From Monocercomonoides exilis PA203 (lineage: Eukaryota; Protista; Preaxostyla), in NCBI GenBank assembly GCA_001643675.2, contig LSRY02000009.1, positions 434,001 to 498,000 on the forward strand: a stretch of DNA of 64,000 nt, given 5' to 3'. The position numbers and the translations under genes are program-made. Under the pieces are notes generated by a model that did not search any database, was not told the DNA's origin, and was given only the letters and a program-made list of their open reading frames with translations. This document shows, one piece after another, positions 21,862 through 28,997 of this stretch; position 1 is the first letter of the stretch; each line of letters opens with the position of its first letter.

Positions 21862-23626
21862 TCAGCCATCGGCAAATGATGATCCACCAATAAATTCTCT
21901 CAGAATCGAATTGATAGGAATATGAGAAGTCTCCAGCGGCTCAAAGCAGCGCACGAAGCTCAGAATGCGCTGGGCTTCGAGATAAACAGGAGAAGAAGGC
22001 AGCAGACGGCGCAGCAGCGGCTCAGCTATCGTCCGAAGCGCGCACATTTCATAATCCAGCGCCGAGTTGAAGATTATGTCTGCGCTGTTTTGAAACGGGA
22101 AAATGTGCTTTTCTTCCCCCGCACGCACAGCGGGCCACCGCAGAATCGTCTCTTCGCCCGACGTCCCTCTGAATTGGTAGTCTCTCACCATCCGCCGTAC
22201 CAGCCGATTATCAGTCGTCGGAACACGGTGCAGCTCATCCAGCGTCAGCTGTGTCAGAGCAGAGATGAAGATCTTGTATTTTTGCTCAGCGGGAATCATC
22301 GGTGTCAGCCGGTCGTTCAGTCCGTGGATGCCTTCCACCACAATGATCGAGTTCGGCTTCAGCTGCACAATTTTTCCTCTTTCCTTTTTGTTGGTCTTAA
22401 AGTTGTACACCGGAATTTGCACTTCTTTCAAGGCAATCAAATCACTCAGCGTTTCATTGATAAGCTTCACATCCAGCGCTTCGAGCGACTCAAAGTCGTA
22501 TTCACCAGAGGCATCCTTGGGGCAGTCTTCGAGCTCGTTGTAGAAGTCGTCCAACGACAAGCAAAACGGATCTTTTCCCAGAACTCGCAGATGTACACAC
22601 AGCTTACGTGCAAATGTGGTTTTACCTGAAGAGGAAGGTCCTGCGATCAGTATCAGCTTGCAATTCTCGTTGCTCGTAGCTGCGGTTGCTATCTCAACCA
22701 TTTTGCGATCATGCAAAGTTTCGCATAGAAGAATGTATTGCCTTATCTTCTGAACAGAATTGTCTAAAACGAGTTTGTTCAAATCCCCGACTGAGCTAAC
22801 ATTAAACGTCCTGCCCCATTTTTTGCTCTCAACAAACGTTGAAAAGATTTTTGGCTGATCAACGAATGGATCAATTATTGAAGGAGTTGATGTGTGAGGA
22901 AAACGAAGTAAAAATCCATTTTCGCTTCCATATTTCAATAATTCATAGCGTGAAAGAAGATTCGTATTTGGAAGAAGAATGCCATGACAAAGTGATACAA
23001 ATTGGTTACAGGAAGAAACAGATATCATTGCTGTGTTTTTTTGGGTTACAAAAGAAAGAGAACGGGACATATTTTTTGATGTGAAATACAAAATCGCATC
23101 CTTCCATGTAATTTGAGTTTTAATGATGGGGAATGAGGAAGAAATAATACTCTTCATTTCATCATCTATTTTGTTGAGAGATTCGATGGATAACGGTGAC
23201 TCGTCTTGAGATTTTGCTTCAAAGAAATATGCAGCTCCTAAAGAATGGCCTATCTCAAGTCGTCTATTTGGTTCAACTTTTTGAAATGCCATTTCCAAAA
23301 CAAATGCCAAAGTCTTCCGATAAATATCACTTCCTAAAGGTGTATCTAAATGGACAGGCAAAATACTTCTTACGTTTGTATTAACTTTAAAATTCATCTC
23401 TGAAAAAAATATATATTTAACCAAAGCAAAAGAAAATATGCAACAAACGTTTTAATTCAGAATTAATATAGCAAGCAACAATTGGCGTTTTCGAAGCGGG
23501 GAATTTTTCTGCGGAAATAATTGAGCTTACATGAATTCCTGATGGAAAACTATGAACAGAATTATCTGGGAAATGCACAAATATTGTATCTTCGCGAATA
23601 GGATCGCTTTCTTGCTCTATTTGCAT
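21862..23626 (-). CDS. Uridine/nucleoside kinase (PRK/Udk family) fused to N-terminal TGS + ThrRS/AlaRS-like domain (about 571 aa)
   Basis: Exon 23626-23449, 49-nt GTTTGT intron 23448-23400, exon 23399-21862. Walker A ILIAGPSSSGKTT, LSLDDFY, YDFESLEALD, IVVEGIHGLN, TTDNRLVRRMVRDYQFRG, GEEKHIFPFQ; N-terminal YRKTLAFVL..IGHSLG is ThrRS-N-like. Confidence 0.92.
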
Positions 23627-23899
23627 TTAATTATTTCTCAACAACAAAAAGATTTGATTTCCAGAATAAATCAAAAATGTGATGGTTTCAGATCTTCAAA
23701 AATTTTCATTTCAATTGAATAATTGAATAATATCGGACACTGCAACAAAAGAATAACAATGATAATTGAATAAAATCTATAGATTTTAAACAACACATTT
23801 TTAACAAATTGAAAAAAAAAATTAAAGCTTTAAGATGGTGTTATTTCAAATTCAACAGATGAAATAGAAAAAAAAATTATTGAAATGATTTCTAATTGT

Positions 23900-26800
23900 T
23901 CACTTTTTCTTTGGTGTTGCAACAACAATTGTAACTCCTGAGCGGGTTTTCGATTGAGGCGATGTTGCTAATCTGGTTGCTTGCTTTGGAGAAGTTGCAG
24001 AAGTTCTAAAACTTCTAAAGGAAGAGGCAGGTGAAGTCGAAGAAGCAGAAGGAGAAGATGAAGAATATGCCGCTGACAGGATCCGAAAATGAGGTGACGC
24101 CGAGCCATGTAGCAAATGCGGCGGTGAATATACAGAATATTTCATTGGATCGCGCTGCACTTCAGCTGCTGCTTTTAACAGAGCTGCTTTCTCATCCTGT
24201 TTAGTGATGAAACGGGGAATCCAAACATCTGCTGGCTCCAAAGAGAATGAAGAAGAATTTGCCTCCGCTGGGATTCGAACCTGCGTACAGGCAGGGATCC
24301 TTCTGCAGAGTTCAAACAGAGCACGTCTCCCGTCTTCTCTGCAGTCGGGTGAGGCATCAGTGACACCACGCAAGATACACTGGAGGAGAAGAGGGAAATC
24401 TTTCCATTTGAAGAGATCGAGTGAAGAAGGAGAAGAAGAAGAATTAGAGGAAGAGGAGGAAGAAACAGAAGAAGAAGAAGTAGTAGTAGTAGAAGAAGAA
24501 GAAGATGCAATCAACATCTTCGGAACCGGCAGATGTGCCAGCCCAAACGCAGTGAATCTGATTACTCTCAGCCTTACAGCTGCTGCTTTGTGTGTCTGAA
24601 ACACCCACAATTTGCACAAGCACCTCAGCAAAAACGAGCAACTTGTCAAATTCGAGTCGCCATACACAGCAGCCAGCACAGAATCCACGCCGTTCTCGAT
24701 AAACCTACTTGATTCAAGCACTTTCTTGAAGACAATCTTCAGCAGTGGCTCTATTTCACTCTCAATGAATGGGTGCAGGAGAAGGCAGATTTCAGCGGTG
24801 GCTGCCAGCGCGCCGCGGGACAAAGTGGAGCGGAGGGACTCGACGAGAGAGGAAGAAAGGGAGAGGAGCTGTTTGGTGCAGGAATGGAGGGTTTCTGAGT
24901 CATATTCTGGTGAAATGGAGTAAGAGGGAGAAGAGGAAGAGGAAGAGGAGGATGAAAAAGGAGAATTAGAATCATTGGTTATATTGGTAATATTGTCATT
25001 ATCGTTATCATTACAAACAGAAATAAAAGAAGAATTAGTATCGATGTATTTATCAGTCTCATCTCCTTTTCCTTCTCCTCTTCCTCCTCCTTCTCCACAT
25101 TCTTTTTTCATTGTTTTCCCTTCTGTTTTTTTGTGGCTTAATTTTCTTGCAATGGCTAAGCAAAGAGAAAGAGACATAAATTGATCCATCCATTGTTCAG
25201 ATTGACTTAACTGTGCTGCTGTCAAAAGCATGTCAAATGGAGAAGAAGAAGAAGAAAGAGAAAGAGAAGAAGAAGAAGAAGAGGAAAGAGAAGAAAGAGA
25301 AGTGATTGGAGGGAATTCGATAGAGGCATCGATGGGGAATTTGGAGTGGGAGGGAGAAGGAGAAGGGGGAGAAGGGGGAGAAGAAGAAGAAGAAAGGGAA
25401 GAAGAAGAAGAGGAGGAAGAAGAAGAAGATGAAGAAGAAAGAGGAGGAAAAGAAGTAGATTGATAAGGTGACAGAGGAGGAGTTGAAAGAGAAAGAGATT
25501 GAGGAGTGAAAGAAGGAGAGGTCATTGGAGAAGAGGATGAGGAGGAAGAAGAAGAAGAGGAGGAGGAGGAAAAAGAAGAAACAGAAGAAAATGAGTCATT
25601 TGAAGATAAAGTATCAGAAAGTCCCCTGTTGAATGTGAAAGAATGAGAAGTGGAGGCGACTGTTGGGCTGATTGGAGTGGTGATGGTGCTTTTTTGAGGG
25701 AAAGAAGAAGAAGAAGAAGAAGAAGAAGAACTGCCCATTGGATGATTAGAGAAGGAGAGCTCAAAAGAAGAGGAAGAGGAAGAGGAAGAAGAAGAAGAAG
25801 AAGAAGAAGAAGAAGAAGATGATGATGATGAAGTTGATGATAAATCCAAAGGTATTTCTTTAAAGTCAGAAGAATTTGTGTCTCTCTTAGCCAATTCTTC
25901 ATTTGCATTCAGAAGTTGCCTCGTTCGTGTGCTTTTCTTGGCAAATGGAGCAGGAGATTTACGAGGAGAGGAAACAAGAGAAGAAGGAGAAGGAGAAGGA
26001 GAAGAAGAAGAAGAAGAAATAGAATTATTATTAACATTGTTAACAATGTTGTTGTTGCTTTTCATCTGCTTCTGAGGAGTTCCCATTGAAATCTGCACTT
26101 GCTTTGGTTTGCGTGCGAATGGAGCAGCTGAATGGGAATCTACAACTGATGAGGTTCTTTTGGAAGGGGAAGAAGAAGAAGAAGAAGAAGAGGAAGCAGA
26201 AGCAGAGGAAGACAAACGGTCGAGTGATGTTGGGATCTTTGATTTAGTACGAGGGGTTGTTGGAGAAGAAGAGGAAGAAGAAGAAGAAGGAGAACGAGAA
26301 GATGATGAGGAAAGAGAAGAAGAAGAAGAAGAAGACGATGAATCTATTGTCTTTTTTAGAACTTCTGTGTGCAAAGTATCAGACAAACATTGTTTTATTC
26401 CATTGTCATCATTGTCATTATTATTGTTGTTGTTTTTATTATTATTCGATTGATTCAAAGAAGAAATATCTGAAGAAGCAGTTGAAGAAGCAGAATCAAC
26501 AGAATCAACAGAATCAATAGAAATCACAGAATTAACAGCTTTTGATGAATTGTATTGAGAACGGGGCAATGAAACTGACAGGAGTGAAAGCTGATTGTCA
26601 TTTGAGGAAGTTTTGGTTGTGTGGTTGTTGAATGAAGAGGAAGAGGAAGAGGAAAGAGAAGAAGAAGAGAAGGAAGAAGAGGAAGAAGAGGAAGGAGAAG
26701 AAGAAGAGGAAGAAGAGGAAGAAAGAGGTTGCATTGTTGTTCCCATTGATTGCACAGATGTTGATGTGGCTTTTAGCGTTTCATCATAATCTGCATTGTT

Positions 26801-28130
26801 GTTCATTGGCAAAAGAGAAGAATTAAAAGAAGAAGAAGAAGAAGAGGAGGAGGAGGGAGATGAAGAGGAAGAGGAGGAGGAAGAAGAAGATTTTGAATCT
26901 GTCTGAGACAAAGATGGACGAGCAATTGTTGCATTTAGTGAAGGTGTGAAAGATGATCTGCTTGAGATTGTAGTTGAAAAGGAAGCAGATGCTGAGGATG
27001 AGGAGGAAAAATCAGATAAGATAACGCAACATCACAGAAATAAATGAATAAATGAATGAAAAATTTAATAAATAAACAAATAAACAGAATGCTACAAAAA
27101 TAAAGATTGTAAAGATAAGCAATACCTGTTTTTTGTACTTCTTCTTTTCCTTCTTTACGAAACCCTTCTTCTTTTTCTTTTTCTTTTTCTTCTTCTTCTT
27201 TGAACTCTTCTCCAAACATTCTTTTCATCCTCTCCTTCTCAATCTCTTTCATCTCTTCCACATCTTTCTCCAGTTGCTGTGGAATCTTACCCCCAAACTC
27301 CATCACAAAACACACTTCTTCTATTGTTTCTCCTCCTTCTTTTCCTTCTCTTTCTCCTTCTCTTTCTCCTTCTCTTTCTCTCCCACTCATCCTATTCTTA
27401 TCAGGACTCATATCCACAGCCACAACCACTGCCAGCTCCTTTTCCTTCGCCACAAACACATTTGTCGCCACAAATCGTGTGTTGCAATGGAATTTGAACA
27501 GATCTTCACTTTCATTCGCAACAGACACCACAAAATCACCATCAATAGCAAGAAATAGGCTTTTATCAGAAGCAATAATAGAAGAGAATGAGAGAGAAGA
27601 AGAAGAAGGAGGAAGAGAAGAAGAACTCGAAGAAATATTTTCTTCTCTTTTCACAGGGATGACTGAATCATAAAGTTGAGTGCCCAGTTGAGAGATGCAG
27701 ATGTGCAGTGAGTGGCTGCTGGTAATCAGAGAAAGAAGAGGAGATTGTGTGTGTTGGGAGATGATTGTGGTGGATGAGGGTGTTTTGTTTGTTTGAGGAG
27801 AAGAAGAAGAAGAAGAAGAAGAAGAAGAAGAGGTAGAGGAGGAGGAGGAAGAGGAAGAAGAAGAAGATGATGATAATGATGATATTAGTGAAGAAATACT
27901 GATTGATGTGAGCTTCAATGTTTGTGTGAATGGGAAGGTTGTTGGGAAATGGAGGGAACGCTCAAAATTGGACAAGTACAGTCGAAGAGATGGAAGAAGC
28001 TGAATAACAATTATAATAAAGATTAAAAGATGTTTATGAAAAATATAGAAATTTTGAAATGGTAATAAAATTTAAAGATAATAGATTTGCAATAAAAAAT
28101 TAGCAACAAAATTAAAAAAAAATTCTCTTC

Positions 28131-28166
<36 letters not shown>

Positions 28167-28997
28167 CACAAACCGGATCACTTTCACTTTGATCAGAATG
28201 AATTTTGCTTGGATTAACGTAAAACTTATGCAGCTTCATGTATTTCTCGGCCAGCGCTTCTTCATTCAGAAACAACAATGCAGCACTTACCATCATTGCT
28301 CCGACAGACTTCGAAAGTTTGAGTCACCATCATTCAAATATTGAAAGAAAGCAAAATTAGTTCGGCTCATTCAATAAATGAAAAAAAAAAACCTGCCCGC
28401 AATCTCCAAGAATGGCCATCATATTCTGCTCGTCTGCAGATAACCATTGCTCCTAAAATGAAGAAGAAAAATTATCATTTTAATACAAAATTGAATTTAC
28501 AAACACAATCAAAGCAAAAGGCTCCAATTTCATTAAAATTGAGATGCCCATTTGCATAAACAGGAAAATATGAACATTCTGCTTTCAAAGAACTGTATTC
28601 ATCTTTTGCATCTGCTTCACAAGAACTTTTTATTAAAAATTTCAATAAAACTTTGGAAAAACAAAATATCACAAACAGTGAGTAAAAGTGCAGTCTTTCA
28701 GCTTTGAATGCAGAGAAATAATTATTAATATCTCTAACATGTTTTTTAATATTTTGTGTTGCAGAAATTGTTGGAAAATGAACAAAGAAGATTCTGCATA
28801 ACGAAACAGAATAATAAAACGCTTCAAAAGAATTTTCGAAAAGAAAACCTTGGCTTAACTTCTAAAATTTTCCAAAAAAGCAAAATATAAAATGAATTAA
28901 TCACTGGATTTGACAAACTAGTGAAAGAAACGTTTTGACGAATTCTTTCGTTCACAAAACCAAATATATCCCCAATTTTTGGTTGACTTATTGTCAT
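23900..28997 (-). CDS. PTEN-like pseudophosphatase + tensin-type C2 + Ser-rich linker + CLASP/crescerin-type TOG domain (about 1496 aa, 8 exons)
   Basis: Exons 28997-28919, 28861-28849, 28793-28677, 28625-28505, 28452-28393, 28308-28174, 27999-27126 and 26991-23900; all junctions GT-AG and in frame. The N-terminus aligns by eye to PTEN (FCFDCEQWLSADEQNMMAI, AMMVSAALL, PSLRLYLSNF, IDGDFVV, LFKFHCNTRFV). The C-terminus has TOG/HEAT motifs (EQWMDQ, VESLRSTLSRGAL, SRFIE, HKAAAVR, GVTDASPDCREDGR). Confidence 0.8.

Follow-up and report, generated by a model that had tools for sequence, protein, structure and literature searches.

A candidate chimeric gene joining a PTEN-like head to a TOG domain in Monocercomonoides exilis

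Do the exons for a PTEN-type phosphatase-C2 module and those for a TOG domain, which lie side by side on one strand in Monocercomonoides exilis, belong to one gene or to two? The question was raised by a locus in a stretch of 64,000 nucleotides (nt) of the M. exilis assembly (contig 91, nt 434,001-498,000; hereafter the window), where a gene was modelled on the minus strand at 28997..23900. Judging from reading frame and splice signals, the PTEN half and the TOG half are quite probably spliced into a single protein. For the fuller reading, that this is one eight-exon gene encoding a chimera of 1,496 amino acids (aa) with the history and working proposed below, a probability of roughly 0.6 was estimated.

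Exon structure of the locus

Eight minus-strand exons were read in frame; together they comprise 4,491 nt, enough for 1,496 codons and the final stop. The model of eight exons joined in frame into a protein of about 1,496 aa came from a sequence-only reading of the window; its splice sites were recovered, including those of the key intron at 27125-26992. The exons and the intron that would join the two halves were as follows.

Exon 1, 28919..28997, minus strand: ATG and PTEN-like N-terminus, MTISQPKIGDIFGFVNERIRQNVSFT plus 1 base
Exon 2, 28849..28861, minus strand: micro-exon of 13 nt, (K)VKPR
Exon 3, 28677..28793, minus strand: (R)IFFVHFP...HFYS(L), first part of the phosphatase fold
Exon 4, 28505..28625, minus strand: SCEAD...YFPVYANGHL...FCFDC, WPD-like loop without Asp and His
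Exon 5, 28393..28452, minus strand: EQWLSADEQNMMAILGDCGQ, first half of a degenerate P-loop
Exon 6, 28174..28308, minus strand: SVGAMMVSAALLF..., remaining half of the dead P-loop, then the next helix
Exon 7, 27126..27999, minus strand: PSLRLY motif, PTEN-type C2 (about 27942-27280) with inserted poly-Ser, then a helix rich in E/K
Intron 7, 26992..27125, minus strand: 134 nt, predicted to join the PTEN-type half to the TOG half
Exon 8, 23900..26991, minus strand: linker rich in Ser, then the TOG domain, the basic tail and the stop

All seven introns were of the GT..AG type, 51-174 nt long, with a GC content of 0.14-0.29 versus 0.27-0.50 in the exons; the genome-wide means for M. exilis introns are 119 nt and 27.6% GC (PMC8767320). 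Intron 1 (57 nt) contained no in-frame stop, so that its retention would merely add 19 residues. Within 28174-28918, the donor was GTTTGT in four of the seven introns of the gene and GTTTT in two more, while GTTTG(T/C) and GTATGT were observed in the PTEN-like paralogues described below; the donor consensus of Streblomastix, GTATGT (PMC1501061), is unlike the GTTTGT donors seen here. Intron 6 contained about 39 consecutive A residues (28125-28163, minus strand). Four RNA runs contained 32-44% of the words sampled from the locus; an exact 32-nt pattern from exon 8 had no match in JGI metagenome contigs.

TOG domain of exon 8

Exon 8, taken in the later searches as two pieces (23903-25354 and 25454-26989), provided the C-terminal half of the predicted protein, with two features of interest.

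24071..25243, minus strand: TOG domain, six HEAT-like repeats and two low-complexity inserts
23903..24070, minus strand: basic Ser/Thr/Pro-rich C-terminal tail

As judged from profile and predicted structure, the assignment of exon 8 to the TOG domains was solid. Pfam CLASP_N matched with 28.4 bits (cut-off 27; E 1.5e-6); only one such stretch was present in the 1,029-aa exon, and the rest of the protein bore no resemblance to TOG. The motifs pointed out in the sequence-only reading (Trp, LRS, RFI, HK...VR and DA....R) were all found, as SEQW, SLRS, SRFI, THKAAAVRLRV and DASPDCR, and the first-loop Trp as well as the LRS, K..F, HK..VR and DA...R positions were retained. The Trp of SEQW was matched by eye to that of all paralogues and of the related protein P0002, this stretch being misplaced by MAFFT in the row of the window sequence, and residues L137, R138, S139, K174 and R302 were invariant in an alignment of eight sequences (A1).

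When 1.84 billion representative proteins were searched by HMMER with the TOG region, only four matches were obtained. The first, P0001, a protein of 726 aa encoded on a contig of Blattamonas nauphoetae (JARBJD), shared 37% identity (E 1.4e-35); the other three, P0002 to P0004, carried strong CLASP_N domains of 54-65 bits. A homologous-protein search with exon 8 (region 600-960) returned none, the candidates being swamped by poly-Ser words. Serine repeats of TCT/TCC occur throughout this genome and swamp word-based protein searches; the stretch coding for poly-Ser in one TOG insert (24400-24510) alone had well over a hundred genome matches at 75-89% identity.

AlphaFold, run from the eight-sequence alignment, gave the TOG repeat core a predicted local distance difference test score (pLDDT) of 80-96, and the paddle of six HEAT-like repeats expected of a TOG domain (typically about 220-250 residues) was predicted; the single-sequence run on the same region reached a pLDDT of 42 and was uninformative. 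The top Foldseek matches of the model were crescerin TOG2, Msps TOG2, Alp14 and the TOG domains of CLASP; sequence identity to solved TOG structures was 11-17%. Language-model features placed the domain at 0.94 to clusters named CLASP_N and XMAP215_CLASP_TOG. The last 75 residues included 10 K/R, no D/E and 36 S/T/P, which bears out the basic S/T/P-rich tail claimed for this end of the protein.

In CLASP, crescerin/TOGARAM and XMAP215 proteins, TOG domains stand in arrays of two to five, whereas the predicted protein possessed one. Nor did it have a CLIP-ID, a coiled coil or any further hallmark of these three families. CLASP proper was accordingly rejected as its identity, there being no TOG array.

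The diverged PTEN-type half

Exons 1 to 7 were compared exon by exon throughout. On exon structure and alignment, this half, which would make up residues 1 to about 410 of the protein, is a real but very diverged PTEN-type module, a paralogue of a multi-exon PTEN-like family in the same genome. Profiles did not recognise it. With Pfam, none of the single exons 1 to 7 matched Tc-R-P, PTP-SAK or DSPc at E <= 10; PF22785 (Tc-R-P), run against the genome in six frames, matched other loci and not this one; and a self-built hidden Markov model (HMM) of canonical PTEN scored at background (4.8 bits for exon 5, 4.2-6.2 bits for exon 7). No meaningful match was obtained when exons 4, 6 and 7 were compared with PDB sequences by phmmer, and no protein was found in a homologous-protein search with exon 7 (region 70-215). 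Of the families that the sequence-only reading expected in the spliced protein, Pfam on single exons recovered CLASP_N but not the PTEN phosphatase or PTEN_C2.

The family members of M. exilis tell more. PTEN-like genes on contigs 11, 20 and 8 are multi-exon genes with an intact HCKAGKGRTG and a PTEN_C2 domain, followed by tails of 300-460 aa without known domains; in the canonical PTEN gene on contig 14, the phosphatase domain lies in one exon, and more PTEN_C2 loci were observed on contigs 25, 15, 29 and 35. Pairwise comparison with the contig 14 gene was significant for exon 5 and the start of exon 7 only. Global alignment with the contig 11 counterparts (5,000 shuffles for each exon) gave p = 0.009 for exon 3, <0.0002 for exon 4, 0.0002 for exon 5 and 0.0014 for exon 6, and the z values summed over exons 3 to 6 were 9.1, 6.7 and 7.4 for the genes of contigs 11, 20 and 8, respectively. 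A collinear chain for the phosphatase domain scored 127, above all of 100 shuffles. The PTEN-like motifs noted in the sequence-only reading are therefore beyond chance, with exon alignments at p 0.009 to <0.0002 and significant matches of the C2 pieces described below.

The arrangement of the exons agreed as well. Phosphatase exons of the same size and limits were present on contigs 11, 20 and 8 (RIIAMGYP...RVYNL, CEPD...FCLDC, ...VIHCKAGK and GRTGLMICC...); exon lengths of 40, 40 and 20 aa were the same as in the genes of contigs 11 and 20, and three introns were common to this gene and the paralogues in position and phase, two of the shared donors following YNL/YSL and FC.DC and the third splitting the P-loop. 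Exon 3 matched RIIAMGYP...RVYNL of contigs 11 and 20 in length and boundaries (donor CT|GTTTGT versus TT|GTTTGC). Over its full length, exon 4 aligned with CEPD...YPFADHNCPP...FCLDC on contigs 11, 8 and 20 (p < 0.0002 in all three cases), and its donor followed GAT TGT in the same phase as in the paralogues. The counterpart of exon 5 was DQYMKQDPKNVCVIHCKAGK, with the intron in the P-loop shared in position and phase (GQ|SV versus GK|GR), and that of exon 6 was GRTGLMICCLLLY... (p = 0.0012 to 0.0038).

The 13-nt exon 2 was supported by two features of the predicted sequence. When it is included, Met1 and the conserved FP lie 38 residues apart, within 1 residue of the spacing in the contig 11 paralogue and just as in human PTEN; its 3' boundary, KPR|I, matched TPR|I of the contig 11 paralogue.

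In the catalytic region, the sequence LGDCGQSVGA was found in place of HCKAGKGRTG, and FPVYANGHL in place of PFADHNCPP. Since HCKAGKGR reads LGDCGQSV and the catalytic residues are lost, the phosphatase is dead, a pseudophosphatase. The counterpart exon of contig 8 has HCKAGKGRTG intact and matches Pfam phosphatase families, with PTP-SAK above its cut-off. The present gene differs from the PTEN-like genes of M. exilis in that these keep both HCKAGKGRTG and the PFADH loop, score in Pfam and have no TOG domain.

C2 domain and its loops

The region directly after the phosphatase domain was supported, by sequence likeness, as a PTEN-type C2 domain in exon 7. Pfam PF10409 (PTEN_C2) did not match this exon, and a six-frame scan of the genome with the same profile gave 14 matches elsewhere and none at this locus. 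In the ESM Atlas, the ten best named clusters for exon 7 were all PTEN_C2 (best 0.91, 187/256 features). Two pieces, the start of exon 7 at PSLRLY... and LFKFHCNTRFVATN...KEL, matched those exons of contigs 11 and 8 that are positive for PF10409 at p <= 0.0008; for contig 20, p was <0.0002 for the first and 0.017 for the second by Smith-Waterman alignment. In common with the M. exilis PTEN-like genes, the C2 domain has the motif F.F..NT.FV.TN and is followed by a VEEWE-like helix.

Two observations on the loops of this domain, both made by eye, bear on lipid binding. The acidic VANESEDL occupies the position of the basic CBR3 loop of PTEN (KMLKKDK), and the basic c-alpha-2 motif is degenerate, with ELAVVVAVDMSPDKNRM where the paralogues have ELDKAISDKKNKH. 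With an acidic CBR3 equivalent and a degenerate c-alpha-2, membrane binding has no positive support, and a protein partner is as likely as lipid.

Linker

25244..27279, minus strand: disordered linker of about 640 aa, with intron 7 inside it, 42% Ser in the part analysed
26231..26242, minus strand: the sequence SKIP in TPRTKSKIPTSLDR, a candidate EB-binding motif of the SxIP type, found by a regular-expression scan

The linker had been put at about 550 aa; by the domain limits used here it was longer, about 640 aa. The SKIP sequence lies in a basic context and could be an SxIP motif that binds EB1; it is a lead only, as about two matches are expected by chance in such a linker. The block SSPRKSPAPFAKKSTRTRQLL was homologous to SPYLPQRF..RRR in the N-termini of stand-alone TOG paralogues, where this basic block, SP.P(F/Y)...R.R, sits about 130 residues into the protein. 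The shared block suggests that the disordered N-terminus of the stand-alone TOG proteins was incorporated and expanded.

One gene or two

Part of the case for a single gene comes from intron 7. Its 134 nt had a GC content of 0.25, a CAG|GTATTG donor, a pyrimidine tract and, 22 nt upstream of the acceptor, a branch-like CTGAT site, and the first AG was used; GTAT donors occur also in the paralogues. The phase of its donor fitted the frame of 1,029 codons that is open in exon 8. Over its first 61 codons (185 nt), this exon contained no ATG, had a GC content of 0.41 and carried in-frame poly-Ser, whereas in the TOG paralogues a stop directly precedes the ATG and the 200 nt upstream have a GC content of 0.21-0.28.

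A partial duplicate of this region on contig 39 (39:852913-854600, corresponding to window 27879-26273) was 78-91% identical, carried stops in its exon 7 part and is a pseudogene fragment. It ran from within exon 7 through intron 7 into exon 8. A processed, intron-less copy that would reveal the splice was looked for and not found; since intron 7 is kept in the contig 39 copy, this is a duplicate of DNA. Within it, the intron was 78% identical and had indels of lengths not divisible by three, while the flanking exon 7, the stretch without ATG and the start of exon 8 were 86-91% identical; the sole indel in the stretch without ATG was of 45 nt.

The alternative, less probable, is that two adjacent, separately expressed genes are present: a dead PTEN-C2 gene ending at the stop at 26935 or in another short terminal exon, and a TOG gene starting at the first in-frame ATG at 26806, the in-frame splice being a coincidence. 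Such genes would be separated by 129 nt only from stop to ATG, at a GC content of about 0.41, where M. exilis has mean lengths of 312 nt for 3' untranslated regions, 62 nt for 5' untranslated regions and 1,855 nt for intergenic regions (PMC8767320). Of the poly(A) motifs defined for this organism, AAUAAA and AAAUAA (PMC8767320), neither was found on the gene strand in 28634-26440. Moreover, no stop interrupts the frame in the 75 codons preceding the ATG, where both paralogues have one at once; the unspliced PTEN protein would end in 63 Phe/Ile/Leu-rich residues from AT-rich DNA; and intron 7, with its full set of splice signals, shows intron-like decay in the duplicate that its 3' flank does not.

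Several observations speak for two genes and weigh against the joined protein. All known relatives of the TOG half, i.e. those on contig 58 (1,338 aa) and contig 12 (968 aa) and P0001, stand alone with their own ATG, and translation from 26806 would yield 968 aa, exactly as long as the contig 12 paralogue. The donor phase would fit the frame of exon 8 by chance in 1 of 3 cases. In comparison with the contig 39 copy, the stretch without ATG had 2 synonymous and 11 non-synonymous differences, a ratio of non-synonymous to synonymous substitution rates (dN/dS) of about 2 on 13 differences, with no purifying selection at the protein level; against the same copy, dN/dS was about 0.45 in exon 7 and 0.66 at the start of exon 8, which is moderate constraint. 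Earlier gene models of M. exilis contained false fusions (PMC8767320). No orthologue with the PTEN-plus-TOG architecture was found when the TOG region was run by HMMER against the representative proteins.

That the locus is instead a recent chimeric by-product of segmental duplications, which are frequent in this genome, transcribed but of no selected function and with both halves decaying, is very improbable: the loss of all catalytic residues and of Pfam detectability in the PTEN half, the large low-complexity expansions, the fragment copies of both halves elsewhere (on contig 39 with stops, and on contigs 32 and 1) and the lack of a detected orthologue would agree with it, but 1,496 codons remain open over eight exons with seven intact GT..AG introns, dN/dS in the two exons flanking intron 7 has the values of 0.45 and 0.66 just given, the family-invariant TOG residues are kept in a confidently predicted fold, and RNA runs contain the locus.

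Origin of the TOG half

A single-TOG family of Preaxostyla, represented by the genes of contigs 58 and 12 and by P0001, shared 38-44% identity with the window copy over the TOG domain, together with an FPID/SIDP lead-in, inserts between the HEAT repeats and a basic disordered motif before the TOG domain. These relatives are single-exon genes that begin at their own ATG, and a C-terminal HEAT block of the contig 58 protein and P0001 is missing from the window copy. Upstream of the TOG genes of contigs 58 and 12, no PTEN exon was found within their reading frames, and six-frame scans with exon 7, exon 6, PF10409 and PF22785 gave no match at these two loci. In the TOG tree, the window copy grouped with P0001 (96/96), both on long branches. 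The long branches and the HEAT block, which P0001 shares with the contig 58 protein and not with the window copy, leave this placement unsure.

The likely history is that a copy of the TOG gene landed just downstream of the PTEN-like gene in the M. exilis lineage and that the 134-nt intron then joined the copy to it. The architecture would be a new combination of two known modules, apparently species-specific.

Two further TOG coding copies of about 600 bp were observed at contig 32:348994-349597 and contig 1:937216-937806; these were 74% identical to the TOG coding region, one with a stop, and lay within a longer repeat sharing the flanking frames MLDKFAADN... and MHNEDDSI.... Such an arrangement suggests gene fragments that travel with a repeated element. 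In B. nauphoetae, the gene upstream of P0001 (L009 6661-9688) begins MNEIAGFPPEDTLRILIATDQHLG and looks like Mre11, with no Pfam family in its record.

Possible function and related architectures

No description of PTEN or a PTEN-like domain together with a TOG domain was found in the literature searched, nor of any PTEN-like or TOG protein of Monocercomonoides. The HMMER scan with the TOG region also found no protein that combines the halves; a PTEN-plus-TOG architecture appears to be undescribed.

A TOG domain with its Trp and a basic Ser/Thr/Pro tail form the usual tubulin- and lattice-binding unit of XMAP215 and CLASP, and PTEN-like modules act as targeting units in tensin, auxilin/GAK and class II formins. 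By this analogy, the TOG domain of the predicted protein, in which the first-loop Trp is conserved, would bind tubulin or the microtubule lattice together with the basic tail; the head, a dead PTEN-C2 module, would localise the protein or serve as an adaptor, binding a membrane or a protein partner; and the long flexible linker would let both ends act at a distance. It would then be a membrane-to-microtubule linker, a microtubule counterpart of class II formins, as proposed in the sequence-only reading. More specifically, and only tentatively since the odds are rather low, the spliced protein might be a dedicated tether or regulator, the first PTEN-TOG protein, whose head docks on a membrane lipid or a protein of the cortex, pelta or axostyle and whose TOG domain and basic tail hold or stabilise microtubules there.

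Class II formins of plants and moss, which combine a PTEN-like module with FH1-FH2, likewise have an inactive N-terminal PTEN/C2 module, a flexible region and a C-terminal cytoskeletal module. They act on actin through FH1-FH2, whereas the predicted protein has a TOG domain, and the two fusions would have arisen without common descent; in contrast to the formins, the basic loops of the present PTEN module look degenerate, and lipid binding by it is putative. Tensin and auxilin/GAK also use a PTEN phosphatase-plus-C2 pair without CX5R chemistry as a targeting or adaptor module, as may be the case here, but they are animal families in which the partners are SH2/PTB, a J domain and a kinase, with no TOG domain.

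In tensin, auxilin/GAK and class II formins, PTEN-C2 modules were repeatedly taken up as targeting heads of effectors in the cytoskeleton or in trafficking. If true, the TOG effector would represent a new, independent recruitment of a PTEN-C2 head, on the microtubule side, and would give a handle on the elaborate microtubular skeleton of oxymonads (axostyle, preaxostyle and pelta). Three things limit its value: only one species seems to have the gene, the splice between the halves is predicted from DNA, and the head has no positive sign of lipid binding.

Downstream region

23841..23846, minus strand: AAATAA, candidate poly(A) signal, 54 nt past the final stop

The downstream neighbour, located at 21862-23626 on the minus strand, is a gene of the uridine kinase/phosphoribulokinase family (Pfam PRK, 76 bits), of which a short upstream exon begins 274 nt past the final stop of exon 8.

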